Source: Takakia lepidozioides (taxonomy: Eukaryota; Plantae; Bryophyta). From it: a stretch of DNA of 64,000 nt. Below are positions 2,816 to 55,619 of the stretch, in pieces; positions within the stretch are counted from its first letter, which is position 1, and the number at the start of each line of letters is the position of its first letter. The notes beneath the pieces were generated by a model. The model was given only the letters and a program-made list of their open reading frames with translations, was not told where the DNA came from and searched no databases. Location: contig CM060732.1 of NCBI GenBank assembly GCA_030704615.1, positions 38,502,001 through 38,566,000 on the forward strand. The letters run 5' to 3'. A program made the position numbers and the translations under genes.

Positions 2816-3050
2816 TCAAAAAATAGAAAAGAATATTCCGTAACAAATTCCATGTTTTTTCATGGATGACATCTCCAAATTTCTCCAAAAACAATAATTA
2901 TTATGGATAAATTCGTCAGATGTTGATGATATGAATGGATGAGAGTCCGGATGTGGATGATTCTGTCCTATTTTGAATGGATGAACAGAATCTATGCCTA
3001 ATTTTGGCAAAACTCTGTAGCCACTCTTGCTATTTTCCGAATTCAAAAAA
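2816..3050 (+). mobile_element. Partial copy of the hAT-type MITE family
   Basis: CATGGATGA..CCAAA...GGATGAACAG...AAAACTCTGTAGCCACTC.TGCTATTTTCC matches the copies at 49250-49498 and 55337-55619. Confidence 0.7.
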
Positions 3051-3955
3051 AAGGCGTACTAAGGCGTACTAATCCGCGTCTACCCCTGCCCGAGTTCTGA
3101 TAATGCAACTAATATTTCAGTCGCGGACATATCGTCAGACGAGTCCCACAATTGCCGACATATCGATGCCGACCAGCATTGTCAGACTCGTTACTTCCAC
3201 AGTTCGCCTCTCCTCCGCTTTTCGAAGAGCCCAAGTTCGAGTTGCTCCAGGTGATGTTCCCATAGTCTCTTGCATTGCCCCCTTGCCCTTTTCTAATCTG
3301 GTTTTGATCATGTTGAGTCTGTGGAATTCCCTTAGTTGCTTTGCTTCCAGATTGCATGCATTGTGTGCATTATTCCAGTCCTGCGTTTACCACTGAGCAT
3401 GAGGTGCCAGTGAGCTTAATCCACTGTGTTTACCATACTGTCCCATGACTGAAGCTAACGTTGTACCTGTAGCTCCTTGGTTGCTTCACTTTTAAAATCC
3501 ACCATGTTCTACAGCATTGTTTCTTGTATGAATCTGAATACCTAGCCCTTTTGTCAGCTGCTAAATTGGCTCCTACCTCTCCTTGACTCCTTCTTCTCCT
3601 GTGTTTGCCAGTATATATTGAACAAGCCTTTGCAATCGTTCCTTCGAACATCACAGGGCGCTGTCTCGCCCATCCAAGGTATTGTATCCCTTCTGACCTC
3701 AGTTGGGCTTACTTCTGCCCTGATTTCACAAATCTGCACCATGTTGTTTCCTCCCTCCAGTGATTTGTGGCCGTGTGCGTAAGTTGTTCTGAACTAATCT
3801 CCGGCATCCGGTGTTTGTTGCTTGACGCAGTTCGTGTTTCAACCATTCGTGGATTGAAAAGCGCTAATGTTATAATATTGCAAGACCATCTTTCCAGGGG
3901 AAAACTTAACTATTGCTTGTGGTAGTAAAGGTTTTGCGAGAGTGTGCTGCTTAAT

Positions 3956-6509
3956 ATGGATCACTTCGCTCTGCCAGACGGCGTTCAACATATCCGTGTC
4001 CCAAATGCCACATCCCTTGAGTACAGTTCTGGAGAAGGCGGGTTCCTATGCTATCCGAGTCGGCGGAACTGGTCCAAAGAAGACCTGCGAGGTGAAAATT
4101 CGTTTGGCGGTAGATCCGCAGCTGAAGTGCAAGACTTTTTCCAAACTTGGCTCTACTTTGGGTGCGTGATCGATGTCCTCGCAGTGAACGGGGTCAAAGC
4201 GATCCCCGCCGAATTCCTAGATGAAAGCAAAAGGTACATTACAACCAAGTATCTGCCGTCCAAGATACGCAAATGGAGGCGAAAGGTCCAGAAAGCAAAG
4301 GATTGCAAACACAAGCGTTGTTTGGAAAGGTGTCTCATGGAGACGGAGACCATCCTGAGCGAGCTATCAAAGTACGTCAACTACTATTGCGCCACGCCCG
4401 GCCGTCCTCGTCTGGAGACGGAGATCGCGAAACCTGAGCACGCGAAATGGCCGCTCACCGAGGAGATCTCCATGTCCATCATCGCGCTCGGGTATACCCT
4501 CAAGCAAGCCATGCTGTCGTTCCACGACATTAGACGCACCGCGAGCAGGTGGGGGTATTCCATCCTTTTGAAGAATCGGATGCTGGCGCAAGGTTGGTGT
4601 CCGATGGATGTTCGGAGAAGTCTCTCGGATATGGGCATCGATGGGCATTACTATATCGCAGCGTTACCGAATCCGCAGGGGAAAGAGTTGCACGCGAGCA
4701 GGGGTTGCACGGAGGACATGTGTGTCGCGCAAAATATTGATGAGTCGACGTACCAGACGGCACATGCGGAAAACTGCGATGGCTGCGAAGATGTCTACGT
4801 CGATGTGAGTCGTGTCGTTGCAATCATGGACGCCAAAGGTACGCCGTCATCTCCTGGAGCGAAGCGGAACAGAAACTACAAGTTGCGACCTTTGATAAGG
4901 ACAAGTCGGATTCACCACAGTACATAGCAATCTCCCACGTGTAAGCTTCCTACCTAAGCAACCGATCGGATTGGCTATACTTAATTTGTGAAACTGACAA
5001 ACTTGTAAGAACAGGTGGGCCGATGGAATGGGCAATCCGACTCATAATTGTTTGCGGCGATGCCAAGTATCACAGATTCAAAAGATGGTGAACGCAGCTG
5101 CAGAATCTGGCAAGGCGAAGGGCAACCCAAGCCACTTTTGGATGGACACTCTCTGTATACCCGTCGCGAAAGATCTAGAGTCGCATCGACGGCTTGCCAT
5201 CCAGGGACTAAAAGGTACTTATAGATATGCGTCTGCGGTGCTCGTGCTATCGTCTGACATTCGAAGAGTGCCATCAACAGCGAACGACCTTCAGAAGAGT
5301 GTCTGTCTGTATTTCTGCAATTGGAACCATCGGTTGTGGACGTTCCAGGAGGGAATCCTCGCAAACGAGTTGCTTTTGCAGTTTAAAGATCAAGCACTAA
5401 GTTTTCGTGAAGATATCGCCTGGTTCGCCGACGGCAAGCATAAGTCGATCGAGGACGGGCACTGCATCACGTTCCCAAGTGAATCGACGGTGAAGAATAT
5501 GGGAGAGTTTGTCGTCCTCCATGACGCCCTGAAGGATGGACTTTTTAAGACCATCGACCAAGCATTGCCGACGATAGTCACGGCGCTCCAGTACCGCACG
5601 ACTTCAAAATTGGCTGATCAGACGCTGTGCATTTGCGGTTAATTGGGCCTAGATCCGAAAGATGTTCTAAATGCCGCTGGGGAGGGAAAAGAGCTTGAAG
5701 AGCAGCGTATGGTGATCTTCCTGTCCATGCTGAAGGAATATCCCTCCGACATCATCTTCAACACGCATGCCCGAGTACAAAAAGAAGGCTTCCGATGGGC
5801 GCCGGAATCTCTTTTGGGGATACCTAAGGACGGCTTCGTCAGGGTTGACGAAGGTCGGGCGACTCTAACCCAGCATGGATTATCCCTGAATTCGCCTGGA
5901 CTCTTCATCCCAAAACCTGTCACCGACCAAACAGCCTTCTCCACCCAATTCCCCGCCCATATCCCTCAAGCCGGTAGAGAGCCCCTCATCTTACAAATCA
6001 ATGTCATCATCCCAGACCGGGAAAAGCTGCAGCAACCTCTTTATTGGGCACAGGGAGAGGACTACGCGGTCATAATGAAGACGACGTTCGAGGACGAGCG
6101 ACGCGAGGAGGCTGAGGCCGCCTTGAGCTTTCCCATCGGAAAGGTGGAGATTGAAGATTTTCTGGAGAAACTCAATCACTTGCAAGCATCTTTAGGACGA
6201 CCCTCGTACGACGCCGTGATCGGGATTGTCCGGGAGGTGAAGCGGGATAGTGGAGATGGAGTTAACTACATACGCTTGTGCCATGAATGCCTCGCAAGCA
6301 TTGTGTTGATGAATCCTTCCGCCTTGCTCGACGACTCTTGGAAGGATGTCGAAGACGATGAATCGGTTGTCACTCGCGCTCTGGCGAAGGCTTCGGTTGG
6401 AGATGAAGGTGACAAGGCAGGTACAGATGGAGACGTGGGCAATGACGCCACTCATACTTCAATTCGGTGCGAATTTTTGCACGAGAATACGCAGTGGTAT
6501 CTTTTGTGA
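3956..6509 (+). pseudogene. Fungal-type HET-domain (heterokaryon incompatibility) protein, copy 1, disrupted
   Basis: Motifs FFQTWLYFG, YIAISHV/WADGMGNP (across intron 4941-5014, GTAAGC...CTGAC...CAG), FWMDTLCIPV and WNHRLWTFQEG. Relative to copy 2 it has a 1-nt deletion near 4847 and an in-frame TAA at 5640-5642. Confidence 0.88.
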
Positions 6510-6653
6510 AACTCGTGGAACTTGGCTATTACACAATACTTTTTCTTAGCTACAAGTATGGTATATTTGCAGCTTGAGACTTCTACAAGCCATACTTCGG
6601 AGGTATTATTTTTATATGTTTCATAGACATGACAACAATATTTATGGCGAGAG

Positions 6654-6852
6654 CATTTTTCTCATTTTTGGCGAATTTTTTTTTTTTTTACCTCTAAAAA
6701 TATAATATAATATTTTTGTCGTAAATTCATGTTTCTCCATGGATGATACCTCCAAAGTTGTCCAAATACAATGAACATAATGGATGAATGTGTCAAATAT
6801 GGATGACATGAATGGATGCTAGTACACAGAAGGATGATTCTATCCAAATTTT
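6654..6852 (+). mobile_element. Truncated hAT-type MITE (cut by a duplication breakpoint)
   Basis: It follows GGCGAGAG and matches 55337-55532, but lacks the right end. Confidence 0.75.
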
Positions 6853-6853
6853 G

Positions 6854-8340
6854 AAGTGCTTGTCCTGGATGCTGGTAAGTGCATAGACCTCCCAAGTGTT
6901 CTAATTGTCCATTCCTTTGGGAACCCTTCTGCCATGTATTATCATGTGTATTATCAAATGTTATCATATTGTCAACTGTGGAGTCCCCATTTGACAAGTC
7001 TGGTCTGCAACTGTGGTAGTCCAGTGGGCTTTGTTAGCCAAACATTGCATTGTACCTATCATTCTACAATAGTCACACAATCATCGCAACCCTTACCTCA
7101 TTGACATTGAATTCAATCAGCGCTTCCCATGGACAAGCAAGGTGGAAGAATATGACAGCCCTATGATTCTACAGTAGTCACACAATGACCGCAACCCTTA
7201 CCTCCTCTTGCTGTGACATTTTGGACTTAATCAGCGCTTCCCATGCACAAGCAAGGTGGAAAAGTATGACAACCCTACGACGCTTTTGGAGCAACCATCA
7301 TCTATGTTTGCCTCTTTGGTTCATGAGTACTCATCAAGGTCAAGTAGCACGACTAACTTCAGAGCAGTTGATAAACAACTTCCAGCACAAGTCGATTTGC
7401 TTGACGAATGAGTCTTCCTTTCAATGCTGCACAACCTCAATTTGAACTCAGGGGCGGTCTCTCACAGCTCCTTCACCTTTTAGTCTAGTGGGTTGCAGAC
7501 CAATGCACGGCTTTTCCCCTATTTGGCGACCTTTTCTCATTGTTTCATCTTCCCTAGTGGCTATCCCTTTGTTGAGTCAAGTAACTGACCCTGGAGTAAG
7601 ATGCTGAAAGTATCCAATTGGGGGAGTGCCTCGGTGGCGAGTACATTAATGGAGATAGTGACGTTTTCTGTGAAATCTTCAAGGAAATATTGTTGGGTGA
7701 CCAGTCGAGGTTCATGTGTGATAGGTTGTGGTACTTCTGACGATTTACTGTAAAGCATTCGTAAACTGATCACCAATTAAATAATCTCTAACTGACTAAC
7801 CACCAACTAACTGATTAGAGCTATCACAAGCAATGTCAAAAATCATATTTATTGCTAGGTGTTTGATGCTATTGTTGCTCCAGGAGCTGAATTGTATAGT
7901 AGTCGTTTTGCTATTCCCATGCGAACAGTATCAGGTCCCCCAGAGACTATCATATTCAGACTCCCGTATCAGCCACGGCCCAATAGAGCATACTGCTCAA
8001 CTCATGCCATCGAGGGCCTTCTGGTTGAAGAGACACCATAATTTACACTTCCTTCGGGGGATGCGTCAAATATTAAAAAATATAATTGGTTTTACAGGAG
8101 GGACCGTTCTACTGAGCAAAAAGTGGGATAATATGTACTTTGATAACCAATATATAGTACATCCGCAATTTCAAAAATTATGTGTTTTGCACAATTGATC
8201 CTCGGTGATTGGGTGTTCAGTTTACAGCTTGCCTATGATGGCTGGATTAGGGTGTTATCCCATCTTCCTGATGTATCCCTCATGGACCCCACATGCTTAA
8301 ATTTTCCATGTTTTATTAAAATGATTTACAGGGCAGCTTA
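6854..8340 (+). pseudogene. Duplicated 3' fragment of the ABCC gene plus downstream flank (copy of about 212-1700)
   Basis: It begins mid-exon at AAGTGCTTGTCCTGGATGCTGGTAAGT and is colinear with 212-1700. The final acceptor is mutated (TGCACAA at about 7250). Confidence 0.9.
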
Positions 8341-8668
8341 CTTCCTCTTTTCTATTTTAAGGAAAAAAATGATTGTTGCTTCATTAGCTATTCTGCTCAT
8401 GTAAATTTTGTGACACTGCACCTTTTGAGGAGTGCTTAACCCCTAAACGGCCACTAGGCCCATTTTGGGCCTTTGGGTTTGGCATTTTTTAATAACTTTT
8501 TAGTGCATGCATGGATTGAACTGAAATATATATATGTTGCTCCTGGGCACCTGGCGGACCTAAACTGGCCGCCCAATTGGACCCAATCTGAGTTAGGGTT
8601 TGGCAGTGACGTTTGACGCAGGAAGACTCCATCCCCAGCTACTCGAACCTTCCCAAACAGTCAAATCG

Positions 8669-25064: not shown

Positions 25065-26345
25065 TATGTGTTGTATCCCGCTGCAATAGAGTATCGACCT
25101 CGTTGAAACTTAGAGTGGCCTGGTGAACGAAGTTGTCACGTTTGGGATCGAAAACCATCCTCTTCAAAAATATGAAATACAAATGTTTGCAGGGTATGAA
25201 TTTACCTCTCTTGCCCAAACTGGTTGATAGCATATTCACAAAATCAGGACATGTGCAATTGGGGGGGAATTGGAAACCGTGATGTCGTAGGCCCTGTCAT
25301 GAACAGCAGATGTCGAAGTGATCATTGTGTACACCCGACCATATCTGGGATCGGGCACTTCCATGGTGTTTGCAACACGAACTTGGAGCATTCTTGCGGA
25401 GTCCACTTTGCCAAAGTGTTCAGCGGTTGGAGGGAAACGCCGAACGAGCTTTCCATCTCGTTTGGTTGGCCAAAAGTGAGGATTTGTCGGAGGTACCCGA
25501 GAGGACGCAGAAGTAGTAGCACATGCATGCAGTTGGGGTTGTCTCGCAAGGGAAAAGTCCGCCTCCTCCAACATTGCAATCTCCTGACTTGTGAGATGTG
25601 TTCCCACCTTGACGGGCCAAACGGTTGGAGGAGCTGGCTTCATCACCACGGAAGGACGCACAGTTTCATGCACACATCTGCCACAATCATCTGCGCAGAA
25701 CCAGAACTTGTGGTTCTTGGCTTCTGGTTGACCGTATGGACGCATCAAACCCGTGAAAGTCGGAGCAGGAGTCTGGGCACCACCTCTGGATATAGATGAA
25801 GTGCACTTCTCGAAATTAGTTGCCCTGATCGTTGTACATTTCACACGAGACCCTGCACTTGTGCGTTCTATGTGCCAAACGTGGTCCGGGCATGCGGACT
25901 CAAGCATATCAAGGGGGTTGTTGCTCTCCTGCATCATTTCAGTGGCACTGTTTGATGCTGGAGCCTGCCGTCGTGTTGGAGGTTCCTCCAGAATGGAAGT
26001 TCTGGATATGGATCTGTCATGTAGAGGAACACCAGGCTTCGAAGAAGTTATCACGGTCGGCCCTGTGCAAATCGGAATCCGAACCAGGTGGAGTATTCAA
26101 TTTCCTCTTATACGAGCCGAATCTCTCCTCCCCTCAGATTGGAAATCTTGAAACAATTCCCGGGATGTGGCTGGGCATACATGCTCACCGCCCGTGCTAT
26201 CTTGCTTGGATCCCCAGATCTGTTTGCAGCACGCAACATCAACTCCAATTTGTCCGGACCCTTGCCACCAACCCCACCTCGCAAGAAATCACGGTATCGG
26301 GTTTGTTGTTGCAAGGCACGTATCAAATCATGTGTACTGCTTTGT
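25065..26345 (-). pseudogene. SWIM zinc-finger-containing TE protein, C-terminal portion (frameshifted, 5'-truncated)
   Basis: DLIRALQQQTRYRDFLRGG.GGKGP; VWHIERT...PAPTF.G...FWFCADDCGRCV; YDITVSNSP/CTCPDFVNM...FIPCKHLYFIF (SWIM CxC...CxH). Confidence 0.7.
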
Positions 26346-26825
26346 ACTCCTCTGTTTATGGTTTTCCACACCAGCAGTTTGTGACTGGTGGTACCGCCAT
26401 TCACTATGAAGCCATGTTGATTTGCTTTGTACTCCTCTGTTTATGGTTTTCCACACCTGCAGTTTGTGACTGGTGGTACCGCCATTCACTATAAAGCCAT
26501 GTTGATTTGCTTTGTACTCCTCTGTTTATGGTTTTCCACACCTGCACTTTGTGACTGGTGGTACCACCATTCACTATGAAGCCATGTTGATTTGCTTTGT
26601 ACTCCTCTGTTTATGGTTTTCCACACCAGCAGTGTGTGACTGGTGGTACCGCCATTCACTATGAAGCCATGTTGATATCTTTGTACTCCTCTGTTTATGG
26701 TTTTCCACACCAGCAGTCTGTGACTGGTGGTACCGCCATTCACTATGAAGCCATGTTGATTTGCTTTGTACTCCTCTGTTTATGGTTTTCCACACCAGCA
26801 GTTTGTGACTGGCGGCCATTCACTG
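26339..26825. repeat. 85-bp tandem minisatellite, about 5.7 copies
   Basis: TTTGTACTCC recurs at 26341, 26426, 26511, 26596, 26680 and 26765. Each unit contains the near-palindrome GTGA.TGG(T/C)GGTACCGCCATTCAC. Confidence 0.95.
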
Positions 26826-32867: not shown

Positions 32868-34623
32868 AATCAACGCTATTCGGTAAGTCTGTTGGTCCAC
32901 AGCACCGGTCCATTGTCGAGGTCCACTGCAGCAGTCCATTGCTACATTCCACTGACAGACTCCTGTGGCGAAACCCGATGGCAGTTCGCTGGGCAAATCC
33001 ACAAGTAGTCCGCTGGCAAGTCCGCTGCTAGTCCCCGACAAGTCCGCTCGGCAGTCCGCTAGCAAGTCCACTCGGCAGTCCTTGGCAAATTTGCTGGCAA
33101 GTCCACTCGGCAGTCCCTGGCAAGTCCGCTTGGCAGTCCGCTGTGGCAGTCCGCTGCCCCAGTCCTAGCTAGGAGAAGTCCAATGGGGAAGTCCACTGGG
33201 TAGTCCAATGGGGTTATTCCAACACATCAACGTCATGGCATTGTACTGTCCACTGGGCGAGTCCAGTGGCTCTGCCCGCTGATACAGGTCGCTGTTACAG
33301 TCCACTCCGACAGTCCACCATTGCAGTCCGATCCCAAGACTCTAATGTGTACCATGTCTGTTGTGCAGAATTGTTTTTGAAGGAGTACTCATTTTCCTCT
33401 ACCTTTGGCATGTCCGTAAGGCATGGGTGAAGCAATCATGCAAGAAAACGAAGGATCCGGTGACCGTTGTAAACTTGTTGAAGGATATGGGAGACCTCAT
33501 GTACTGTAGAGGGGGACCACGCAACGAGAAAAGAGCGCTTCGGTGGGTTGTAAGGAGAATCCGTCGTATGAGGTCAAAATACCCGAAAGGACATGAATTT
33601 CTTGACTATATCGAACAGTACTGGAAGCCCAAAATAGCAATGTGGTGTATAGCAGCCCGCCATGTCCCTCATGCGAGCCAAGACACAAACGCAAGCATTG
33701 AGGCATACCATGGAAATCTGAAGGCAAGACTTGCCATGGGGAAAGGCAAGATGAGTGGTCGTAGAGTGGACTGGCTTATATGGGAACTCACTGGCCGTGT
33801 GCTAACTCACTACTGGTACGCAATCCATTTGAAGACCCACGGGTTCATAAGAAATGACAAACACGAAAAGTACATATCCAGTTCTATACTTGCGGCACGA
33901 GACATTCCTGCTGAGAGTGTTAGTCTTCCCTTGGGTCCTGGTGAACCAGCCTACGTTCTCAGCAGCAACCACCTCGACACAACATACATTGTTTACAATC
34001 CTGATTGCGATTGGGCTTGTTGCACGTGCCCATGGGCAATGAAGGGAAACTTATGCAAGCATCAGGTCCGTGTCTTGAAGATGCTTCACCCTGACCTGCA
34101 CGATGGCCTCCTTGTGCGCGCTTGTGGCACGGCACTGGGAACCATTCATGGAGGATTACCTAACTTGCTCTTGGGCAATGGTGCCGACGGCAACGACGAA
34201 TCCAATCAGTTCATGGAAAGACATCCTCCGTACGACTTCCCCTACGACGAGGCACCTCTAGAGGTCTCAGCCTCAATGGAACAAGAATTCGCGGACATAC
34301 TTCGCATTGTAGGTGATGACAAATACCTGGAGGCACATGCCCGATCTGCTCTTTGTATGTGCAGAGGGCAGCTCGTTGATATCCTGGCGAAAAGTGCGGC
34401 TGGAATGTTGCACCCTGCGGCAGCGAAGGCTTTCCGTTCTCTGAACAACAACAACAACATGTCTCTGAAAAGGAGACGAGATTTCGTGGAGGCCTGGAAA
34501 ACCCGGCCTAGGGTTTTGCGGAGAACCAGCAAGAGGGTGTCTGCACCTGCACCTGTAGCACATATATACTCAAAAATTCGCAAGGTTTCAAGTCGTGTAG
34601 GTGTCACGAAGAAGACAATATAA
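32868..34623 (+). pseudogene. MULE-1 transposase C-terminal part with SWIM finger
   Basis: Resumes after the TSD as (E)INAIR, intron GTAAGT at about 32883, then LYLWHVRKAW, FLDYIEQYW, ASQDTNASIEAYHGNLK, RRVDWL and CCTCPWAMKGNLCKH. Confidence 0.9.
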
Positions 34624-35371
34624 GTCTGCAATGCCTCGAAAAGAGACAAGGTTTCAGGTCGTGTAGGTGTCACGAAGAAGACAATATAAGTCTGCAATTT
34701 CTCTGGTAGCATTGTCCCTTTCTGAAATACAAGTCCGCAATGGACTCATGCACAGTCTCCCTACGGACTCCTCCAGTCTCCACAATCCCAGCACACTCCG
34801 GCACAAACTCCCATCAGACAGCTGCAGAGTCCCATAATGGACTCCTGCATAGTCTCCCAACGGACTCACGCACAGTCTCCCAACAGAGTCACAGTCGACA
34901 GACTGCGAACGCCAGTAAGCCAGTCTGCTACCCACTCCAAAAGTCTGCTCACCACACTTCCACCTCATCCCTGCAACTCTTCCAGCAAACTGCTGGACAG
35001 ACTAAGTCTCAAGCAGACTCATCCACAACAACAGACTCAAAATGGACAGGCTCCAGTGGACTATCTCCCTAACGACTCATGCCAATCCAGCGTCCCAACG
35101 GACTCATGGACATGGTGCCTACCAGACTAGGTACCAGACCCACCAGTCCTAGCCTCGGCAACGTACTGCTTGCACATTCAAGCTCAGCAGACTCGGGTGC
35201 ACAGTGCATGGAAAAATTGACACCATTGTGTCCATTGAGTTTAGTGACAACATTACAAAACATGCCAGCACCCACAGTACACAAAAGTGCTCATCACCAC
35301 TGGAATAGTAAGCGAAAAGACTCGCATTTTTTATTTCGGTACATAGACTTCACAGGACAAGTACATCATAC

Positions 35372-38300
35372 TCATGAGAGCAGTCTCTCTACATTGTCCA
35401 ACCCCCGCACAATATACTGGGCACACTGCATTCGCTGCCCAAGTGCAAACTTGAAAGTAAACCAGTCCTTCGTGAAAGGTGTTCCTCTCTCTGGCTTTGC
35501 AGTCTTGGAGACATTTCCTTTGACTTTTACCCACTCATAAAACACTTGAATGAATAACATGACGTAGAAGCCATACTCCCAGCTGAATGGTTGCTGGGGT
35601 ACATCAGGCATGGAACTGAAATGCTTGGACAATCTCATGCCACTCCGGTGAGTCCATCGAGTACCCTAAGCACTCAGCATGAAGCTTCCGAATCCACCCT
35701 AGAACAAAAGGACAACCATGCGAGTCCTTGATAGAGTTCAGGTGAGTGTAACAGCCCTTGCGGAGGTCGATGATACAAACACTCCAGTGCCCCCTGCAAT
35801 GGTATCAAACAACATGGCGTCATTGCACAATCATGATGGGGCAGACTCAGCAGACTGACACTCAGCATACCGACCACTCAACAGACTCAGCACTCAGCAG
35901 ACTCAATCTTCAAACCCAGTCCACTTCACAAATATAGAGGTCAACTTAATCGCTTGGAGTCAATACGACACTGTGAAACCAGACTATGACTCAGGAGACA
36001 GTCTCAGCAGACTCGGAAGAGTTCTTATTCGTCCCCAATTGGCACCAAAATGAAATCGCACTCTTTCAAGTCCTTGCCCAGTCGTTCAGTGCTGAGGCAA
36101 CCTTTCAAGACCTCCAGAAGGCTTTCACATTGCCCCACCCCCAATGACTTCAACACCGTCCACGTCGACGTTGGAAAAACAGCAATAGTGTTGGTGAACG
36201 CAACCTCAACCGACTTCTCATAGAATCGACACCACAGCTCCAGGAGTCTATCTGTGCACTCTTCAGGAGCGCCTTTATGTCATCTGGCGACAGTCCGCAT
36301 TCAAACCGTAGTGTAGTGTGAGTGCAGGGGGTAAAAATTCAAGTTTTTGTTTGGCATCAGGTTTCGGCACTACTACAAAGGGAGTGCCCTTCGTGCTAAT
36401 GAAGGGGAGGAATTGTCCATAACTTGAGGTAATTCCATGGAAAGACTATGATATTGATCTGCCAAAAACAAAATATGGCTAAGTAATGACATGCGCCTTT
36501 TCATCCCTAGGATGAATGATTTTCATCCATGATGTTGAACCCTAGAAGCAGGATGTGAAATTCGAAGGGGAAGAGTGCGTGTATCTTTTCGCAGCTGCTG
36601 CAGTGGTGTTGGCAGCACAAGATATCTGAGAAAGTTCCACCTACGCAAAGGGTATCAGCTTGCTTTTAAGAGAAATGTTAAGAGCTCCTGCTTGGCTTTC
36701 TGTGCAAGAAGAAGCGGTGCCGCCTTCTTCGTAAGCAATGATCAAACCAGAGGGATCAGGTTTGTGATAAGGGCGGTGCACCACTGCTGTCGCATTGTCT
36801 TGATGAGCACATTAATGAGGAGATGGAGCGGCTCAGCAGGTGTTGGGGGATGAGAAATGCAGGCTGGTGTGTATAGCGCCTCAGGTTGTCTGTGATCAAA
36901 TCTTGTAGCTGCTATCTGTTTTTGAGCTTTAGGACCAGATCACTTTGTAAGGGAATCAGCTTGCCTTAAAGAGCGACGTTAAGGGATCTGGCTTGGCATT
37001 CTGTGCAAGAGGAAGCGGTGCCGCCTTCTGGTGTGTATGGCGCTTAAGCTACCTATAATTAAGTTTTGTATCTGCTCTCTGTCTTAAAGGCTGTAGGACC
37101 AGATCACTTCATAGGGAAGAAATGCACATGTAGAAGGATAGGGTAGAGGTTGGCAGACACAAGGATGTGCCAGCAGCTGAAGCAGAGCCGTCATGCCTTG
37201 ATGAGGACTGGAATCACGATAAGAAGAGACGTCGGAAATGGCTGACGAGGGAGAGGACAAGGTGCTTTCGTGACAGGCAGACCCGCCGCTTCAATGAGTA
37301 TAAGACAGATAAGTTTGAAGAGTGGCTTTCTCTTTTTTTTGGGTGACTTAGAAATCGCTTTGTGAAGTTTGGACTGTCTCTTGTATGTAGTAAGAGACAC
37401 TGACATGTGAGGAAGAAAAAGAGCTTTGGAAATGGAATGAAGACACTGGACTTCAAACCAGGATGGACTGGAGATGGATGCACCTGCTGTTACATTGTAG
37501 AGTAGGAAAAATGAATGGAAACAGGTTGATTCGTTGCTGGGACAGAATGGTTGTGTTGTTGTATTCTTGTTTCTTGTTTCAGCGTCATGAGCTTGTACAA
37601 ACAATCTAGCCTGGGATGTTGACACATTGCAGTCAATGTGGAACTAGCTTAGTAGGTAGAGGAAACCAGTGAGAGTTAGATAGAACTGTTTGGAAACAAC
37701 AAGAAGGGATGATGTGGATGGGGCACAAAAACCAACATCTGTTTGGGTTTGGATCTGATTCTCAGGGTGCTCTCAGCATGTGAACCACTGAGGTTCACAG
37801 TTGATGGGAAAAAGAGAGCTGTCAGGGTGTGTAAATTGAGACCTGTAGAAGGGTTGAGAGCTGTCTTGGGCAAATGGCTACACCTGGGAAAAGTAGAGTG
37901 TGAAGCATCTGTCATTGGCAAGAGAGGGACTGATAAAAGGGCTGATTATATCTTGTGTGACCAAGGTTGATTTCAATGCTGGGTGCACTGGATGCTTGGC
38001 TGAATGCGCATTGCATTGCATCATAGACATGCTACAGTGGAAAGAGTGAGGAACCTACTCACCCTGAAGGAAAGAGAAAGGGAGAGAGAAAAGGACATAA
38101 GGGAGAGAGCTGACCAGCAAGAGGGGATGGAGAGGAATGGATGATTGGGGCGGTAAGATAAAGAAAGCATGAACCCATGAAGGGCCAAACTGGTGGGCCT
38201 GCAACTCATGGCAGATCTGAGTTGCCTCCTTCCAAATCGTGATCTTATTACAAAGGGGATTCCACTTGTTGCTGACCAAGGAGCTGCCACAAGGGCAGTG

Positions 38301-38700
38301 GTCATCACTGACGTAGGGCTGGTTGCATCACTGAAGACAGCATGGTAACAGGGCTGGTGCAGTGTACCAGGGAGAGGATGTTGGTAGAAGTAGAAACCAC
38401 GGTTAAAACAATACAGACTCCCCATCCATGTCTTCTCTTCCGCTGCGGCGTGGATGAGGATTGTGTGAACTCTGATCATGAAGGACCTGAGGGAAACCCA
38501 CACCGAGTGACGAGGGTTGGATCACCTGAGAGGACAGCTCCTTTCCTTCCCTCCAATTGACTTGGGGAGGAGCACAACTACACTTGCACAGAAGGGGATT
38601 CACGCCCCTTCTTTTCACACTACAGTGGGTCCCCTTCAAAAAACATCAGCATGGAATTACCCGCCTTGACGTGCAGAGCATGTGCTTTGCCAACCGAGCG
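35372..38700 (-). pseudogene. Ulp1-like (peptidase C48) protease cargo of MULE-1, interrupted; catalytic Cys lost
   Basis: GDPRFECGLSPDDIKAL, LLELWCRFYEK, GHWSVCIID and VPQQPFSWEYGFYV. Homologous to 61640-62862. Confidence 0.72.
36312..38624. mobile_element. 2.3-kb non-coding insertion with TGTAGTGTGA...TCACACTACA termini (solo LTR or Ginger-like non-autonomous element)
   Basis: Perfect 10-bp inverted termini and a 4-bp TSD GTAG/GTGG (1 mismatch). Excision restores the Ulp1-like frame GDPRFEC, matching GNPRYDC in MULE-2. Confidence 0.8.
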
Positions 38701-40901
38701 AGCACCCATCCTGCACAGAGCAGACCATCCTTCGGGAAGCCTCATGTACTGAACAGACTGACGTCAACATGGTACCCAAACACTCTACAGCTGAACAGTT
38801 CATCAGACTGACAAGACTAACCACAAAGACAATGATGAAACCACAGCAGACTGACCAGCGAGTAGACTGACCACAACAGAGCGCAAAGCACTTAACGACA
38901 AAGACAGACGAGGAGACTGAGCACAGTACTCACCTGTGCTACTCCAGGAAACGACCCACATCTTTGTCCATGTCCAAGGCAGCTTGCGGTTCTTGTTCAT
39001 AAAGACGCCGGACTTTTCTTCGCCGGTCTCTTGGTACTTGGACCCTCCTCGCCTCCTCAGCATGGTCCACGACAATCCGCTTCTTGGCTTTGCCTCTCCC
39101 CTGGGAAGCAGGGACAGCTGTAGGCGGGCTGGATAGAGCAGACAAACGCAGCGCTGCCGCCCTACTTTGCAACAGAGACTGGTCAGCAGGTTTGTTTACA
39201 CTTGTTGGACCTGTCTTTGCAGCTTCATGGGTCGCATGCATAGAAATGACCCGCGCATCGGGGGGCGTGCTCACCCCCACACCTTTCTTGGTTGTCGATC
39301 CACGTTGCAGCATGGGCGGCGGAAGATGCCATGTCCTTAGAAGTAGACAGTCTGCCGACGGAGGGACGAACATCCTGTGAGGATACCGAGCAAAATGACG
39401 AATTAGCCCAATTTCACAATGTGCTAAAACATAAACAACAGTGCTGAAAGAGGAAATGGCACAACCTGCCCAAGGGGTGAGGGAACAGACTCCATGTAAT
39501 CCAGCGCTATACCAGACGGTGTCTGCGCAGCATGTGGTTCCTTGTCAGTATGCCTGTCAGCATGTTTAGTCTGTTGCTCAATGTGGGCAGTCTTCGGTGC
39601 CGGTTCTTCGTCAGTCCTTTCGTCTGTGAACTGTGCAGTCTGTTGGCAACTCTGCGGTTCAGTCTCTTCCTCAATGTGGGCAGGTTGGTCGTCAGTCCTT
39701 CCCTCTGTGAAGTGTGAAGTATGCTGGTTAGGCCGTGCAGTCTGAACTGTGCAGTCAGAGCTGAGCTGTGCAGTCTGCCGCTCCGAGCCATCCTGGTCAG
39801 TCCTTCCATCTGTGATCTGTGCAGTCTGCTGGTAAGTCTGCGGTTCAGTCTGCTCATCAATGAAGACAATATGCTGCCCCGCCACATGTTGCTCGGCAGT
39901 CCTTCCATGTGTCGACTATTCAGTGTGCTGGTAAGTCTGGTGGACAGCCGGCTGGGTGTTCGGATCTCCATGGACTTGGGAAACATCAAGAACATGTATG
40001 GAAGACCTACCGGCAATTGCTTCCTCAAACTCTTATGTAAGATCTATGATACGGTTTTACGTTCCCAAATTGAGTTCCATCATCACGTAAGACTCATCTA
40101 TGGCTTTCGCCACTGAGCGCACGAAAACGGGACTAAGCTGGAAGGTCATAGAACGCAAGCCACGGGGAGCTGGATAAAAATGTTTTACCGGTGACCTGAT
40201 GACGTCGTCAGTGAATGTGCCTGGGGGAAAAGTGGACTCGGTCAAAACACTCATACTGGCAGATCCAAAAACATGTTGTTGGGAACTCAGAAGAAATTCG
40301 TCCACAGGGTCCCGGTGAGGCCAGTGCATCCGAGTCTGTTGCACAATCCAGGGAACAGACTGGCTGTTAGTCTCTTGGATAGTCTGCTCGGCCATCTGCT
40401 GAGTGGATTCGCCAGTGTGCTGCACAGTCTGTTGAGGGGCAATCTGCTGGCTGGATTCGACGGTCTACTGCACGGTCTGCTGCGCCGTCTGCTGAGGGGC
40501 AGTCTGGTGGCCATGTTCGCTGGTCTGCTGCACAGTCGGCTGAAGGGCAGTCTGTTGGCGGTCTGTTCTCCGATCTGCTGCAAAGTCTGCAAAGTTCGCT
40601 GCCCGCTCAGTACTGTTTGCACAATACTGAGTATGTGTGTGCGGGTAGTCTGCTGGGAGTGATCCGGCCTATTATCCGGGACGGTCTGGTGCACATGCTC
40701 GGTCTCCAGCACTTGGGCAGTCTGCCCACATGTCGTGAGGAATATGTTGTTGGACATTCTTGTGGCCAGTCTGCTGGACAGTCTCCTCCTTGTAAAGCCA
40801 GGACAAGGTCCCTTGCACCTCTGGCAAAAGAATCGAAAGCAGCACTGGCTTGTCTCCCAGATCAACTCGCCCTGCAACACATGTTTATGCAAATGTGAAC
40901 T

Positions 40902-46960: not shown

Positions 46961-48183
46961 CTATAGCTCAAACGCAAGTCTTATCTGATGAGACTGGAAT
47001 GCGAAAGGAGCACCATATCGCAAGCTCTCAGGCCTCTTCCTGCGCCTATCGTTCTCGTATGCTTGCTTGTTCGTGCCATCCCACCAGCTTTTTTCTGCAG
47101 GTCGTACGTTCCCATTAAAGAATTCCTTAAGCAGAGACCTCCCGACAGTTTCATGGTTTATTTCAAGATCCATCAATGCATCCAGGACCTTTGGTGCTCA
47201 AATGACTCAATTTTAGTCAAGTGAATGCCTGTTGTGCTTTGTCCCCGACTCGCCCCTGCAACCACCACATTTTGGATCATGCCGAGACCACCAACCGCAA
47301 GCAGGTACCATGTGTTCTGCTTCAGGCCCGCAACCGTGAGGAGAAATACAATCCACAGAGCTGCTAGCACCACACACATAACCTGGGTTATCCGGAACGA
47401 GGCAGGGACACTGCCAAGCATCAAAACTTCTTTGTCCTTCAGGTGTGCCCCATTTTCGTCACGCACACGCGTCGCCAGGCGGTAGCCCTGCTCGGATCGT
47501 CGCCTCATCATTGGGCTCTCCGCCGCTGCCAGATCCTCGAGATCCAGTCCTCTTCCATCGCCGAGGATGACCATCACATGCCTTGTGCCATTCCCGCCAG
47601 TCAGACATACCACCTTCTCGCTCTTTGTTCGACATGCCCACTTTTCAAACCGCCATTGCGGTACCGAGCCTGTAGTCAGAGCTAGCAGTGTTCCTGCAGC
47701 TGTCGCAAGGAGGATTCCCGGGTCACCGTACAATCCGCATGGGATAGCTGAAATTCCCAGCTGCAAAACTATGACCAGAACTCCCCCTACCCAACACCAG
47801 TCCTTGTCTGGACTACCTGCTTCCCTTTCTTCCGCTTTGAAGACAGTAATATGTAGGCCGATGTGGTCAGCAAGTGGAAACTCAAAGTCCCGGAGCAACC
47901 GGCTGAGTACCCAGGATCTGTTGGAGCGGATGTAGCCAGACTCGGCGTTGATGACCTTGGCGGGGTAGTCCGGCAGAGGCATTAGACGTCCATCTCCCAC
48001 GATTGCCATCAGGGTGCTGAACGAGTATGCTACCCATCCGAAACTGACAACGGGCACCAGACGATCTCCTGAGAGTTGAGCAAGAGCTTTCTGTACTACA
48101 TCACCGCCAATAATGAGTAAGACCGACAAGATGTCGGAGGGGCTCCGCCATTGCGCGGACAGCAGGGACACGGTGGAACTCAT
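46961..48183 (-). pseudogene. Fungal-type conserved multi-pass membrane protein, one frameshift near 47190
   Basis: QWRSPSDILSVLLIIGGDVVQKALAQLSG, SFGWVAY, GDGRLMP.PD, NRSWVLSRLLRDFE, QWRFEKW.CR, GNGTRHV, GLDLEDLA, GLKQNTWYLLAVGGLGMIQN and, after the shift, LMDLE...GRSLLKEFF...E..WW. I recall this motif series from ascomycete hypothetical proteins. A putative 48-nt 5'UTR intron GTAAGT..CAG lies at 48233-48186. Confidence 0.78.
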
Positions 48184-48720
48184 CACTGAGAGGTTGCAAA
48201 GGTAAGCAATGCTAACAATCTCTGCTAACTTACGTTACTGCTTATGGTTCGACCTTCTCAAGCAAGTGTTCCATACATTCGTGCGACCCACTGTCGTTTC
48301 TTGCGACTGTACTAACAAAGGAGATGACTGACGAACTCTTCTCTGGACTCTCGGTGGGACTCATCAGAGGTGAGAGCGGGAAGGTCAGGCAGGATTGTAC
48401 TGTATAAACGTCATAATCAACGAGTTTGTTTCTGGGTGTTTTGATCGGCAACGGATCATCCCACTGCAGTATGTAACTTAACCATTTGAAACCCCTAGTC
48501 TGGGATAGTTTTCCCTTGAATTTGCAGCGGCATACATGTCAACAGCTATTTGGATGGGAAATGGTGCCATTGATTCAAGGTGCACAGCCAGCTGCAGCCA
48601 GACTCCACCGACTTTTACCAAGTCAACGTCATTATATTCTCTGGGTGCAGTCGGTATCATGTTTTTACATGTGGCCCTCACAACATAATACTTATGTATC
48701 GCGTTCGATGCACTTGAGCA

Positions 48721-49249: not shown

Positions 49250-49498
49250 CAGCCATTCTCTTAGTGGCGAATAATCGCCAGATTTGGACCTCAAAAAATA
49301 AAATCGAATTTTCTGTCGCAAATCCACTGTTTTTTCATGGATGAAATCGCCAAATTTCTCCAAATAAAAAATAAAAAATGGATGAATTCGCCAAATATGG
49401 ATGATGGTACATAGGTGGATGAACAGAATAAATGGCTATATCCTGCAAAACTCTGTAGCCATTCGTGCTATTTTCCAAATTTCTTAAGAAAAACACTG
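49250..49498. mobile_element. hAT-type MITE
   Basis: Ends CAGCCATTCTCTTA and TAAGAAAAACACTG. 8-bp TSD ACCCCATG/ACCCCAGG. Confidence 0.8.
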
Positions 49499-50590: not shown

Positions 50591-52637
50591 GTGTGAAGGT
50601 AAGAAAAAAACATCAATCTCAGATCAGCACGCACAGCTACACACAATGTACTTTCGAAACACTCTACCAGACCACTTCTCTCTTCGAGGTGAGGGATATA
50701 AACTTTGAGCCAGCGTCATTGGGGAGTTGGCACAAGTTACATAGCGATCTTTGAACTTCACAGGGAGCTGATTAAAATCCTGCAAAGCTTTATTTCCAAG
50801 CACATCACATGACACAGGACTACCTTACCAGTGTGCACATGTATAATACCTAGTTTACATTCTGGAATCCGATTGCTTGCAACTCCAGACCCTCACATTT
50901 ATGGATCATATTGAAACCACAGTTTCAACTTTCACGAGAGCCTCGAGGGAGCACAGAGATTGCAGCTACATATAGTGTGACCATCAATGCTGTCGCAACA
51001 AGTTAATAAAATGAGATTTTTTTCAAAGACATTATTAAGAGAATCGTTTTATCCTCAAGATAAGACTTTTTACAATATTCTCTTAGGCTTGACGTTCAAC
51101 CTCAGGCCAAAATACGTATAATACCAAATATGATATGTAGAGCCGTTTCATTGGGGACCTGATTGGAGAGAGTGGTCCAGAAATTACTATGGCCCAAGAA
51201 TTAGATATGGGGCGCTTATGTAGTAAGGTGTATTAGGGAATGAGATAGGGGGTCCAAAAAAAAAGGGAGGAATTGAGAATAGGGAATCTTGTAGGGTTAA
51301 CATGTGTCTAAGGCCTTCTAGAAGGTCCCCGGGTTTGGCGGGCTTCTAGAAGGGTTTCACGCCCAGAGGGTATATAAGGGTGGGCCCCCTCTTTACTACC
51401 TACTACTTACTAAATTAGTAAATTGTGGGCTCTGCAAAGGTAAGGCCCCCAAAAAAACAGCAAACATGAATCAATTAATTAATAGAAGCCACAATAAATA
51501 ATAGATTATGGCAAAGAGTAAACAATTGTTAACAAATAAGACAACATTTGATAGTGTGCACACAAGTAAAGGAGTAAAATTATCTTAACATTTATGGCAG
51601 TTTAACGTTTATAGAAGTAACATTTATCCAGGCAGACCAAGTCTCCCTGGATAAATGTTAACAGTCGGGAGTAGGGAAAAAAATAACATTTAGACAAGGT
51701 TAACACTTTTTCTTTTTTTGAAAGATAAAAGGAGACAGGCGGTGTTTTGTTTTTGGCGAATTTCTACCCCTACCCGAGTTTTGATAATGCAACTAATATT
51801 TCAGTTGCGGACATATCGTCAGACGAGTCCCACAATTGCCGACATATCGATGCCCACCAGCATTGTCAGACTCGTTACTTCCACAGTTCGCCTCTCCTCC
51901 GCCTCTCCTCCACTTTTCGAAGAGCCCAAGTTTCGAGTTGCTCCAGGTGATGTTCCCATAGTCTCTTGCATTGCCCCCTTGCCCCTTTCTAATCTGGTTT
52001 TGATCACGTTGAGTCTGTGGAATTCCCTTAGTTGCTTTGCTTTCAGATTGCATGCATTGTGTGCATTATTCCAGTCCTGCGTTTACCACTGAGCATGAGG
52101 TGCCAGTGTGTTTACCATACTGTCCCATGACTGAAGCTAACGTTGTACCTGTAGCTCCTTGGTTGCTTCACTTTTTAAATCCACCATGTTCTACAGCATT
52201 GTTTCTTGTATGAATCTGAATACCTAGCCCTTTTGTCAGCTGCTAAATTGGCTCCTACCTCTCCTTGACTCCTTCTTCTCCTGTGTTTGCCAGTATATAT
52301 TGAACAAGCCTTTGCAATCGTTCCTTCGACATCACAGGGCGCTGTTCTCGCCATCCAAGGTATTGTATCCCTTCTGACCTCAGTTAAGCTTACTTCTGCC
52401 CTGATTTCACAAATCTGCACCATGTTGTTTCCTCCCTCCAGTGATTTGTGGCCGTGTGCGTAAGTTGTTCTGAACTAATCTCCGGCATCCGGTGTTTGTT
52501 GCTTGACGCAGTTCGTGTTTCAACCATCGTGGATTGAAAAGCGCTAATGTTATAATATTACAAGTCCATCTTTCCAGGGGAAAATTTAACTATTGCTTGT
52601 GGTAGTAAAGGTTTTGGGAGATAGTGTGCTGCTTAAT

Positions 52638-55192
52638 ATGGATCACTTCGCTCTGCCAGACGGCGGTCACCATATCCGTGTCAAAAATGCCACATCCCTT
52701 GAGTACAGTTCTGGAGAAGGCGGGTTCCTATGCTATCCGAGTCGGCGGAACTGGTCCAAAGAAGACCTGCGAGGTGAAAATTCGTTTGGCGGTAGATCCG
52801 CAGCTGAAGTGCGAGACTTTTTCCAAACTTGGCTCTACTTTGGGTGCGTGATCGAAGTCCTCGCAGTGAACGGGGTCAAAGCGATCCCCGCCGAATTCCT
52901 AGATAAAAGCAAAAGGTACATTACAACCAAGTATCTGCCGTCCAAGATACGCAAATGGAGGCGAAAGGTCCAGAAAGCGAAGGACGGCCAACACGAGCGT
53001 TGTTTGGAAAGGTGTCTCACGGAGACGGAGACCATCCTGAGCGAGCTATCAAAGTACGTCAACTACTATTGCGCCACGCCCGGCCGTCCTCGTCTGGAGA
53101 CGGAGATCGCGAAACCTGAGCACGCGAAATGGCCGCTCACCGAGGAGATCTCCATGTCCATCATCGCGCTCGGGTATACCCTCAAGCAAGCCATGCTGTC
53201 GTTCCACGACATTAGACGCACCGGGAGCAGGTGGGGGTATTCCATCCTTTTGAAGAATCGGATGCTGGCGCAAGGTTGGTGTCCGATGGATGTTCGGAGA
53301 AGTCTCTCGGATATGGGCATCGATGGGCATTACTATATCGCAGCGTTACCGAATCCGGAGGGGAAAGAGTTGCACGCGAGCAGGGGTTGCACGGAGGACA
53401 TGTGTGTCGCGCAAAATATTAATGAGTCGACGTACCAGATGGCACATGCGGAAAACTGCGATGGCTGCGAAGATGTCTACGTCGATGTGAGTCGTGTCGT
53501 TGCAATCATGGACGCCAAAGGTACGCCAGTCATCTGCTGGAGCGAAGCGGAACAGAAACTACAAGTTGCGACCTTTGATAAGGACAAGTCGGATTCACCA
53601 CAGTACATAGCAATCTCCCACGTGTAAGCTTCCTACCTAAGCAATGGATCGGATTGGCTATACTTAATTTGTGAAACTGACAAACTTGTAAGAACAGGTG
53701 GTCCGATGGAATGGGCAATCCGACTCATAATTGTTTGCGGCGATGCCAAGTATCACAGATTCAAAAGATGGTGAACGCAGCTGCAAAATCTGGCAAGGCG
53801 AAGGGCAACCCAAGCCACTTTTGGATGGACACTCTCTGTATACCCGTCGCGAAAGATCTACAGTGGCATCGAAAGCTTGCCATCCAGGGACTAAAAGGTA
53901 CTTATAGATATGCGTCTGCGGTGCTCGTGCTATCGTCTGACATTCGAAGAGTGCCATCAACAGCGAACGACCTCCAGAAGAGTGTCTGTCTGTATTTCTG
54001 CAATTGGAACCATCGGTTGTGGACGTTCCAGGAGGGAATCCTCGCGAACGAGTTGCTTTTGCAGTTTAAAGATCAAGCACTAAGTTTTCGTAAGGATATC
54101 GCCGCGTTCGCCGACGGCATGCATAAGTCGACCGAGGACGGGCACTGCATCACGTTCCCAAATGCATCGTCGAGGAACAATATGGGAGAGTTTGACTTCC
54201 TCCATGAGTTCCTCAGGGATGGACTTTTTAAGCCTATCGACCACGCATTGCCATCGATAGTCACGGCGCTCCAGTACCGCACAACTTCAAAATTGGCTGA
54301 TCAGACGCTGTGCATTTGCGGTTTAATGGGCCTAGATCCAAAAGATGTTCTAAATGCCGCTGGGAAGGGAAAAGAGCTTGAAAAGCAGCGTATGGTGATC
54401 TTCCTGTCCATGCTGACGGAATATCCCTTCGACATCATCTTCAACATGCATGCCCGAGTACAAAGAGAAGGCTTCCGATGGGCGCCGGAATCTCTTTTGG
54501 GGATACCTAAGGACGGCTTCGTCAGGGATGACGAAGGTCGGGCAACTCTAACCCATAAGGGACTATCCCTGAATTCGCCTGGACTCTTCATCCCAAAACC
54601 TGTCACCGACCAAACAGCCTTCTCCACCCAATTCACCGCCCATATCCCTCGAGCCGGTAGGGAGCCCCTCATCTTACAAATCAATGTCATCATCCCAGAC
54701 CGGGAAAAGCTGCAGCAACCTCTTTATTGGGCACGGGGAGAGGACTACGCGGTCATAATGAAGACGACGTTCGAGGACGAGGGACGCCAGGAGGATGAGG
54801 CCACCTTGGGGTTTCCCAGCGGAACGGTGGAGATTGAAGATTTTCTACAGAAACTCAATTACTTGCAAGCATCTTTAGGACGACCCTCGCACGACGCCGT
54901 GATCGGAATTGTCCGGGAGGTGAAGCGGGATAGTGGAGATGGAGTTGAGTACATACGCTTGTGCCATGAATGCCTCGCAAGCATTGTGTTGATGAATCCT
55001 TCCGCCTTGCTCGACGGCTCTTGGAAGGATGTCGAAGACGATGAATCGGTTGTCACTAGCGCTCTGGCGAAGGCTTCGGTTGGAGATGAAGGAGACAAGG
55101 CGGGTACAGATGGAGACGTGGGCAACGACACCACTCATACTTCAATTCGGTGCGAATTTTTGCACGAGAATACGCAGTGGTATCTTTTGTGA
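52638..55192 (+). CDS. Fungal-type HET-domain protein, copy 2, intact (exons 52638-53623 and 53698-55192; 826 aa)
   Basis: Spliced frame is open. Motifs FFQTWLYFG, GWCP, YIAISHVWSDGMGNP, FWMDTLCIPV, WNHRLWTFQEGILA, ALQYRTTSK and GFRWAP. The 74-nt intron is GTAAGC...AACTGAC...ACAG. Confidence 0.92.
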
Positions 55193-55336
55193 AACTCGTG
55201 GAACTTGGCTATTACACAATACTTTTTCTTAGCTACAAGTATGGTATATTTGCAGCTTGAGACTTCTACAAGCCATACTTCGGAGGTATTATTTTTATAT
55301 GTTTCATAGACATGACAACAATATTTATGGTGAGAG

Positions 55337-55619
55337 CATTGTTCTCATTTTTGGCGATTTTTTATATTTTTTACCTCGAAAAATATAATATAATATTTTG
55401 TCGTAATTCATGTTTTTCCATGGATGATACCTCCAAACTTGTCCAAATACAATGAACATGATGGATGAATGTGTCGAATATGGATGATATGAATGGATGC
55501 TAGTGCACAGGAGGATGATTCTATCCAAATTTCAGTGGATGAACAGAGAATATGGCTATTTCCTACAAAACTCAGTAGCCACTCGTGCTATTTTCCAAAT
55601 TTCAAAAACAAATCGCCAG
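55337..55619. mobile_element. hAT-type MITE in the HET 3' flank
   Basis: Same family as 49250-49498. 8-bp TSD GG(T/C)GAGAG at 55329-55336 and 55620-55627; the paralogous flank at about 6646 reads GGCGAGAG. Confidence 0.78.

Follow-up and report, generated by a model that had tools for sequence, protein, structure and literature searches.

Short divergent patches between two fungal-type HET paralogs of the moss Takakia lepidozioides, with ectopic gene conversion as a possible cause

The window analyzed here, 64,000 nucleotides (nt) of the moss Takakia lepidozioides (GenBank assembly GCA_030704615.1, contig CM060732.1, positions 38,502,001 to 38,566,000 of the forward strand), contains two copies of a gene with a fungal-type HET domain, called copy A and copy B below, which are nearly identical except in a few short patches. 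All positions refer to this window. Self-BLAST of the window and an identity profile placed the two genes in direct copies of a ~3.8-kb block, block B at 51763-55532 (plus strand) and block A at 3079-6851, which share 95.9% identity over 3789 alignment columns, with extra homology upstream of the blocks (51011-51630 to 2279-2812). A tblastn search of the 64-kb window with both exons returned copies A and B only, and no terminal inverted repeats were found at the ends of the duplicated blocks. The copy B gene (52638-55192, plus strand) has two exons and an intact product of 826 amino acids (aa). Exon 1 (52638-53623), which begins with the ATG at 52638 and is followed by a GT donor at 53624, codes for an N-terminal domain common to fungal homologs and for the first HET block; after a 74-nt GT..AG intron (53624-53697), exon 2 (53698-55192, with the TGA at 55190-55192) codes for what remains of the HET domain, followed by a helical extension and a C-terminal domain that is beta-rich. 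Copy A (3956-6509, plus strand) has the same layout (exon 1, 3956-4940; intron, 4941-5014; exon 2, 5015-6509) and carries two lesions in this assembly: codon 297 has lost 1 nt after position 4845, and codon 538 is a TAA stop (5640-5642). As assembled, copy A is apparently disabled and copy B is intact. Since the copy A deletion sits in a short G run and is absent from short-read contigs, which show a G at the matching place in copy B (53528), it may be private to copy A or an assembly error. The spliced coding sequence was joined for codon counting only; searches and folding were done exon by exon.

Three HET blocks are visible in copy B, YIAISHVW (across the intron), FWMDTLCIPV, and WNHRLWTFQEG, and residues W42, D44, T45, W103, R106, W108, T109, and E112 are invariant across a 64-sequence alignment. 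Against the PF06985 profile (cutoff, 22.5 bits), the exon-2 product of copy B scored 20.7 bits and the copy A piece scored 23.6 bits, with the first HET block outside both queries, while two full-length fungal homologs, P0012 and P0016, scored 36.7 and 39.8 bits. The weak Pfam match arises because the intron splits the domain and removes its first block. Pfam searches with exon 1, the C-terminal 267 residues, and the patch segment gave no match at E values up to 1. E values reached 5.7e-59 for the Hypoxylon protein P0012 and 1e-41 to 1e-49 for Mycena and Collybia proteins with PF06985. The nearest database proteins were 36 to 42% identical, none exceeding 42%, and came from metagenome or run assemblies, followed by Hypoxylon, Mycena, and Aspergillus. 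Copy B shares its N-terminal domain, HET domain, and C-terminal region with P0012 and P0016. At three homolog loci on metagenome or run contigs with compact fungus-like neighbors (L001, 4927-7500; L002, 586-3452; L003, 3-2469), an open reading frame (ORF) of 329 to 331 residues is followed by a gap of ~65 to 78 nt and an exon-2 ORF, and the position of the intron thus appears to be common to the plant copies and their fungal-type relatives. An AlphaFold2 model of exon 2 had a mean predicted local distance difference test (pLDDT) score of 84.6 and a predicted template modeling (pTM) score of 0.85. Its nearest shapes in an atlas fold search were Ascomycota HET proteins, some with a Het-6 barrel, and comparison with solved structures gave nothing meaningful (Foldseek best E value, 0.03; VIA-align best Z score, 4.7, generic helical). 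Just before the HET domain, exon 1 contains a Cys/His-rich stretch (53380-53480; copy B residues ~250 to 280) that is kept in the full-length fungal homologs with the consensus H-x2-C-x4-C ... H-x3-C-x-C and is possibly a zinc-binding module.

Aligned at an offset of 48683, the two genes differ most strongly in two patches. Patch 1 lies directly after the HET core on the plus strand (copy B, 54091-54256, codons 461 to 515; copy A, 5408-5573), with 24 of 166 nt substituted and 17 of 55 residues changed, 5 of them through two-base codon changes. Patch 2, also on the plus strand (copy B, 54780-54862, codons 691 to 717; copy A, 6097-6179), has 11 of 83 nt substituted and 9 of 27 residues changed. 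A third, smaller cluster in exon 1 of copy B (52979-52995, plus strand, codons 114 to 120) has 5 substitutions in 17 nt. The background divergence of the blocks is 0.027 at noncoding sites (34/1275 aligned); the intron differs at 2 positions, and codons 129 to 240 of exon 1 differ by one residue change and zero synonymous changes. In permutations, 24 differences in a 166-nt window were reached in 0 of 20000 trials (p<5e-5), and patch 2 was still significant once patch 1 had been removed (p=0.005). The patches are real, and their clustering is far above chance. The first-pass annotation of this DNA had drawn attention to both patches, and our counts bear out its estimates of about 17 and about 9 changed residues, its N-terminal stretch of about 110 residues with one difference, its nearly identical intron, and its multinucleotide codon changes. 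The peptides that it quoted agree with the translations, and its coordinates were right for copy B and off by one base for copy A. The copy A lesions, the third cluster, and the larger gene family had escaped it.

Within patch 1, the differences fall on the three codon positions as 8:9:7, compared with 21:17:17 in the rest of the coding sequence. Both copies hold derived states in patch 1 at positions that are conserved in the family consensus, and outside the patches the derived residues are about equally divided, 9 in A and 9 in B. Patch 2 lies inside an insertion confined to the closest homologs, where the alignment gap fraction across the wider family is 0.80. We found no evidence for a special mutation process in the patches, where the ratio of transitions to transversions (13:22) does not differ significantly from that of the remaining coding nucleotides (31:25; p=0.13). 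General rate heterogeneity across the family was also considered and rejected as a sufficient cause: in close pairs of fungal homologs the patch 1 segment is only 1 to 2.5 fold more variable than its neighbors, compared with 4 to 8 fold between A and B, and other segments that vary across the family (residues 630 to 669 and 730 to 769) differ little between A and B.

We asked how the excess divides between silent and replacement changes, using Nei-Gojobori (NG86) counts, which are pairwise between two sequences and of low power. Over the whole gene, the proportions of synonymous (pS) and nonsynonymous (pN) differences were 0.034 and 0.037, with a ratio of nonsynonymous to synonymous divergence (dN/dS) of 1.08. 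The corresponding values were 0.118, 0.153, and 1.33 in patch 1; 0.087, 0.149, and 1.81 in patch 2; and 0.027, 0.024, and 0.89 in the rest of the gene outside the patches. The synonymous density of patch 1 exceeds that of the rest of the gene (Fisher p=0.022), and four-fold sites are changed at 3 of 22 positions in the patches, compared with 9 of 325 elsewhere (p=0.034). Silent divergence is thus 4 to 5 fold higher within the patches, about in step with replacement divergence, and a dN/dS above 1 is not supported by this comparison for either patch 1 (p=0.79) or patch 2 (p=1.0). Since silent divergence rises about as much as replacement divergence, the pattern points away from selection and toward conversion from a more distant copy; given the small counts, this is a lean rather than a proof. 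The first-pass annotation had proposed diversifying selection or a gene conversion patchwork and had named an equal rise in silent divergence as the outcome that would speak against selection. That rise is what the counts show, and of its two proposals, conversion gains from it and from the mosaic third copies described below, while selection loses ground because dN/dS does not differ from 1.

Evidence from independent sequencing came from six runs in three studies that contain this stretch, and the contigs of four of them were aligned on 52300-55500, two being DNA runs (X1 and X3) and two RNA-like runs (X5 and X6). Contigs from X5 and X6 join 53623 to 53698 across the GT..AG intron and contigs from X1 and X3 do not, so that X5 and X6 behave as RNA. 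Two RNA-like runs therefore contain transcripts of a B-like copy from which the predicted intron has been spliced out, and one X5 contig (53225-54163) has only four differences from copy B. A joint between 52357 and 52510, seen in one X6 contig only, indicates a probable intron of 152 nt in the 5' untranslated region of copy B (52358-52509, plus strand, GT..AG). The copy B version of patch 1 (54135-54313) is present without any difference in contigs of all four runs and is tied to B-like flanks by an X6 contig (54062-54313) and by the X5 contig mentioned above.

The same contigs show that copies A and B have relatives. Between 70 and 105 contigs per DNA run map to the 3.2 kb, contig ends coincide with patch borders in all four runs, position 54795 is covered by at least four distinct contigs per DNA run, and the contig letters at 54101, 54102, and 54112 match neither A nor B. 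Taken over the three studies, the read contigs contain at least four or five patch versions in the species, and these versions, drawn from contigs of three samples, are not assignable to particular loci. Over 52300-53367, the main X1 contig has A-like letters at 52666-52684, 52905, 53020, and 53224; since it has only 12 differences from B in all, it must be B-like over most of 52813-52995 and is thus a mosaic. A further version of the third cluster, in X3 and X6 contigs, has 1-nt deletions at 52990, 52997, and 52999 that are net in frame, and frameshifted versions occur in the DNA runs only (1-nt deletion at 54282, 1-nt insertion at 54988, and 13-nt deletion at 55018-55032). The family thus comprises several copies, some of them broken, that are mosaics of one another and diverge most strongly in the same patches, with third copies that mix A-like and B-like letters, in small counts, alongside the raised silent divergence of the patches. 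In X1, depth was ~195 on shared parts and 40 to 80 on patch-specific contigs, a ratio that suggests several copies but on which we do not rely, since depth does not equal copy number. In all four runs, contigs also match up to 54163 and resume at 54255, with GC..AT ends, which reflects either a copy with an out-of-frame 91-nt deletion or a patch 1 version too diverged to align.

Because several near-identical copies exist, it might be supposed that A or B in the window is a chimera of paralogs and that the patches mark misjoined reads. The copy A deletion in a G run where contigs read G would suit such an assembly artifact, as would the finding that any one run contains only 0.57 to 0.73 of the words sampled from copy B. 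We nevertheless consider it very improbable, since patch 1 of copy B recurs letter for letter in all four runs and is linked to B-like flanks in two of them, and an X5 contig with 13 non-B letters over 54732-54890 has exactly the number of differences that separates A from B there, across patch 2. The recurrence of patch versions in independent runs indicates that distinct versions exist in the organism, whatever their linkage.

A second alternative is that these are decaying copies, transferred or transposon borne and without function, in which the patches are local mutation clusters or old differences kept by chance. Neutral decay would suit the dN/dS of 1.08 over the whole gene and 0.89 outside the patches, the spread of differences over codon positions there, the equal share of derived residues in A and B outside the patches, the frameshift and stop of copy A, the frameshifted copies in DNA contigs, and the transposon-rich setting with DUF4216 and SWIM domains nearby. 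It does not predict what is seen in copy B and its relatives. Copy B retains an 826-codon frame, transcription and correct splicing of a B-like copy are seen in two studies, and four runs from three studies share an identical patch 1 of copy B. Coding DNA has far fewer indels than flanking DNA, with 1 event in 2481 coding nt and 8 in 1289 nt of flank and intron (binomial p=0.0012); the deletion in copy A is the sole coding indel among the 9 events between A and B, although coding sequence makes up 66% of the length. The helical periodicity of the variable positions, described below, is likewise unpredicted. We therefore regard neutral decay as unlikely. The suggestion in the first-pass annotation that the genes form a functional system fares accordingly: the intact, transcribed, and spliced B-like copy and the depletion of coding indels are in its favor, and the disabled state of copy A in the assembly is not.

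In our view, the best reading of these data, held with about even confidence, is short-tract ectopic gene conversion within an expressed HET family that evolves by birth and death. Copies A and B would belong to a family of full-length HET genes of fungal type, recently amplified in a transposon-rich plant genome, with each gene encoding the four parts described above for copy B, from the N-terminal domain to the beta-rich C-terminal domain. The blocks are ~2.7% diverged at neutral sites, and the patches and the small third cluster are ~14% diverged, silent and replacement sites alike, which suggests that the patches have an older genealogy than the remaining gene. The most likely cause would be short-tract ectopic conversion or recombination among diverged family members, and the resulting mosaic would have several versions of a few cassettes next to the HET core. 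Birth and death would turn the family over, with B-like copies intact, transcribed, and spliced and with A and some others carrying frameshifts or stops.

Several observations weigh against conversion as the cause. No donor for either patch version was found in the 64-kb window, where a word search gave chance matches of 11 to 12 letters only, and a 100-residue query over patch 1 (54041-54340), which sought fragment proteins of other copies, found nothing. Conversion is thus inferred rather than traced, and so is a role for the patches in specificity. The depth of contigs does not measure copy number, and rare variants drop out of contigs. The silent counts are tiny (4 NG86 synonymous differences and 3 four-fold sites), and 2 of the 4 synonymous differences fall in codons with a second change. 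Furthermore, replacement density in the patches is 5 times the neutral background, which would also fit selection on a surface, and among the variable residues the i/i+4 spacing expected of a helix is favored, with 8 pairs compared with 4.3 expected (p=0.013).

These last two observations bring in a third alternative, in which the patches would be an exposed surface for recognition next to the HET death domain, diversified in place by selection since the duplication, with no need for conversion. Residues there would have been driven to change faster than neutral sites, as in fungal het alleles or plant immune receptors. In the exon-2 model, patch 1 falls on predicted helices (exon-2 residues 130 to 139, 141 to 146, 153 to 173, and 180 to 191) and patch 2 covers a loop and the first part of a helix (residues 376 to 391). 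The variable residues line one face of a long predicted helix (R=0.45, p=0.024), and off-face spacings are depleted (p=0.012). The helix-face and spacing tests were picked after seeing the data, and the pattern is suggestive only; on the predicted model, it fits an origin of the variants in folded, functioning proteins of which one exposed face was either free or driven to change. In-place selection would also account for a patch pN of 0.15 where neutral divergence is 0.027, for the many codons with two changes and the even spread of differences over codon positions, for changes by both lineages in a family-conserved motif, and for a reading frame that is nearly free of indels in a gene whose B-like copy yields spliced transcripts in two independent runs. 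What such selection does not predict, if it acted on residues only, is the 4- to 5-fold rise in silent divergence within the patches. The dN/dS of 1.3 to 1.8 in the patches is, moreover, indistinguishable from 1, the value of ~0.9 outside them means that a ratio near 1 is not patch specific, copy A is broken, and the helix tests were selected post hoc. Selection for diversity is not demonstrated by these pairwise data, and we regard in-place selection as possible but rather unlikely. Conversion among family members thus stays our preferred account.

Beyond the two HET genes, the window contains DUF4216 and SWIM domains, as found in plant transposons, an ORF with an NIF phosphatase domain, and a second Ascomycota-like ORF (47173-48186, minus strand, 337 codons). 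The latter lies head to head with copy B at a distance of 4.4 kb, has a feature score of 0.96 to Ascomycota hypothetical proteins, and matched no Pfam family. The window therefore has a HET gene near another fungus-like gene and transposons in plant DNA, and the transposon domains and second Ascomycota-like ORF agree with what has been published on HET regions of fungal origin in mosses (PMC3493653, PMC7911284, PMC4540973).

Repeats are frequent around the genes. Two 1.5-kb direct repeats (212-1722 and 6854-8359), 89% identical, lie on either side of copy A and resemble long terminal repeats or a single element present twice. Homology between A and B stops at 6851, three bases before the second repeat, and no repeats of this kind flank copy B in the window. 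A shorter repeat of ~120 to 240 nt, 76 to 81% alike, occurs in one orientation at 2813-3052, 6690-6855, 49288-49405, and 55373-55612; the one at 2813-3052 interrupts the homology as an insertion of A with respect to B and is thus probably a small mobile element. The contigs over 55403-55500 reach ~9x the depth of those over the gene. Further away, several inverted matches with 74 to 75% identity between 34434-40196 and 63988-60226 represent two old, opposed copies of a ~5.7-kb element, of which the one at 34434-40196 has an ORF with a weak match to the SWIM zinc finger and may be Mutator-like (MULE-like). A tandem array at 26338-26812 has a period of ~85 nt, with units 96% identical.

HET families of fungal origin are already known in mosses, and copies A and B add to them. 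Physcomitrella patens has ~20 fungus-derived HET genes (Yue et al. 2012, PMC3493653), and two moss regions, FR1 and FR2, contain HET, HLP, and conserved-fungal genes together with mobile elements (Sun et al. 2020, in the summary given in PMC7911284). As in those families, the HET genes described here are multicopy and expressed, and the window holds a fungal-type HET gene beside a second Ascomycota-like gene and transposon domains. Those of P. patens have been characterized as truncated (PMC11228847); in contrast, the architecture of the present copies is fully fungal, with 826 aa, an apparently fungal intron position, and a best database identity of 42%. The literature searched, which did not extend to Sun et al. 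2020, makes no mention of patchwise variation between moss HET paralogs.

In fungi, the Neurospora crassa genes het-6, pin-c, tol, and het-e have divergent haplogroups, recombination within and between groups, and positively selected codons (Zhao et al. 2015, PMC4540973). Copies A and B resemble such allorecognition genes in having the PF06985 family with all three blocks and nearest structural matches among Ascomycota HET proteins, and their mosaic variable segments recall the pattern of haplogroups and recombination. Unlike variants at fungal het loci, however, they are paralogs in a plant genome rather than alleles at one locus, the pairwise comparison gives no significant dN/dS above 1, and copy A is broken.

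As they stand, the data describe a fast-turning, mosaic, and partly decayed family, which is useful for annotation and for choosing copy B for tests. More speculatively, a horizontally acquired fungal HET gene may have become an expressed, multicopy, receptor-like family in which a helix face beside the HET core serves as a specificity surface, diversified by selection and shuffled by conversion. Together with a neighboring putative fungal-type membrane protein gene, such a family might form a nonself or antifungal cell death module, comparable to the clusters of nucleotide-binding leucine-rich repeat (NLR) genes in plants but based on HET. We consider this proposal unlikely. If the patches truly are a specificity surface, they would offer a tractable case of a transferred cell death domain rebuilt into a plant recognition system.

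Plant NLR clusters and the HNWD genes of Podospora turn over by birth and death, and ectopic conversion shuffles short hypervariable segments on exposed faces of their products beside a conserved signaling domain; positive selection is well documented in both families. Copies A and B differ from them in having neither a nucleotide-binding domain nor a repeat array, and their variable segments are predicted helices beside the HET core rather than leucine-rich or WD repeats. With that general background in mind, the likeness of the Takakia genes to NLR and HNWD families would lie in birth-and-death turnover and in short segments shuffled by conversion.

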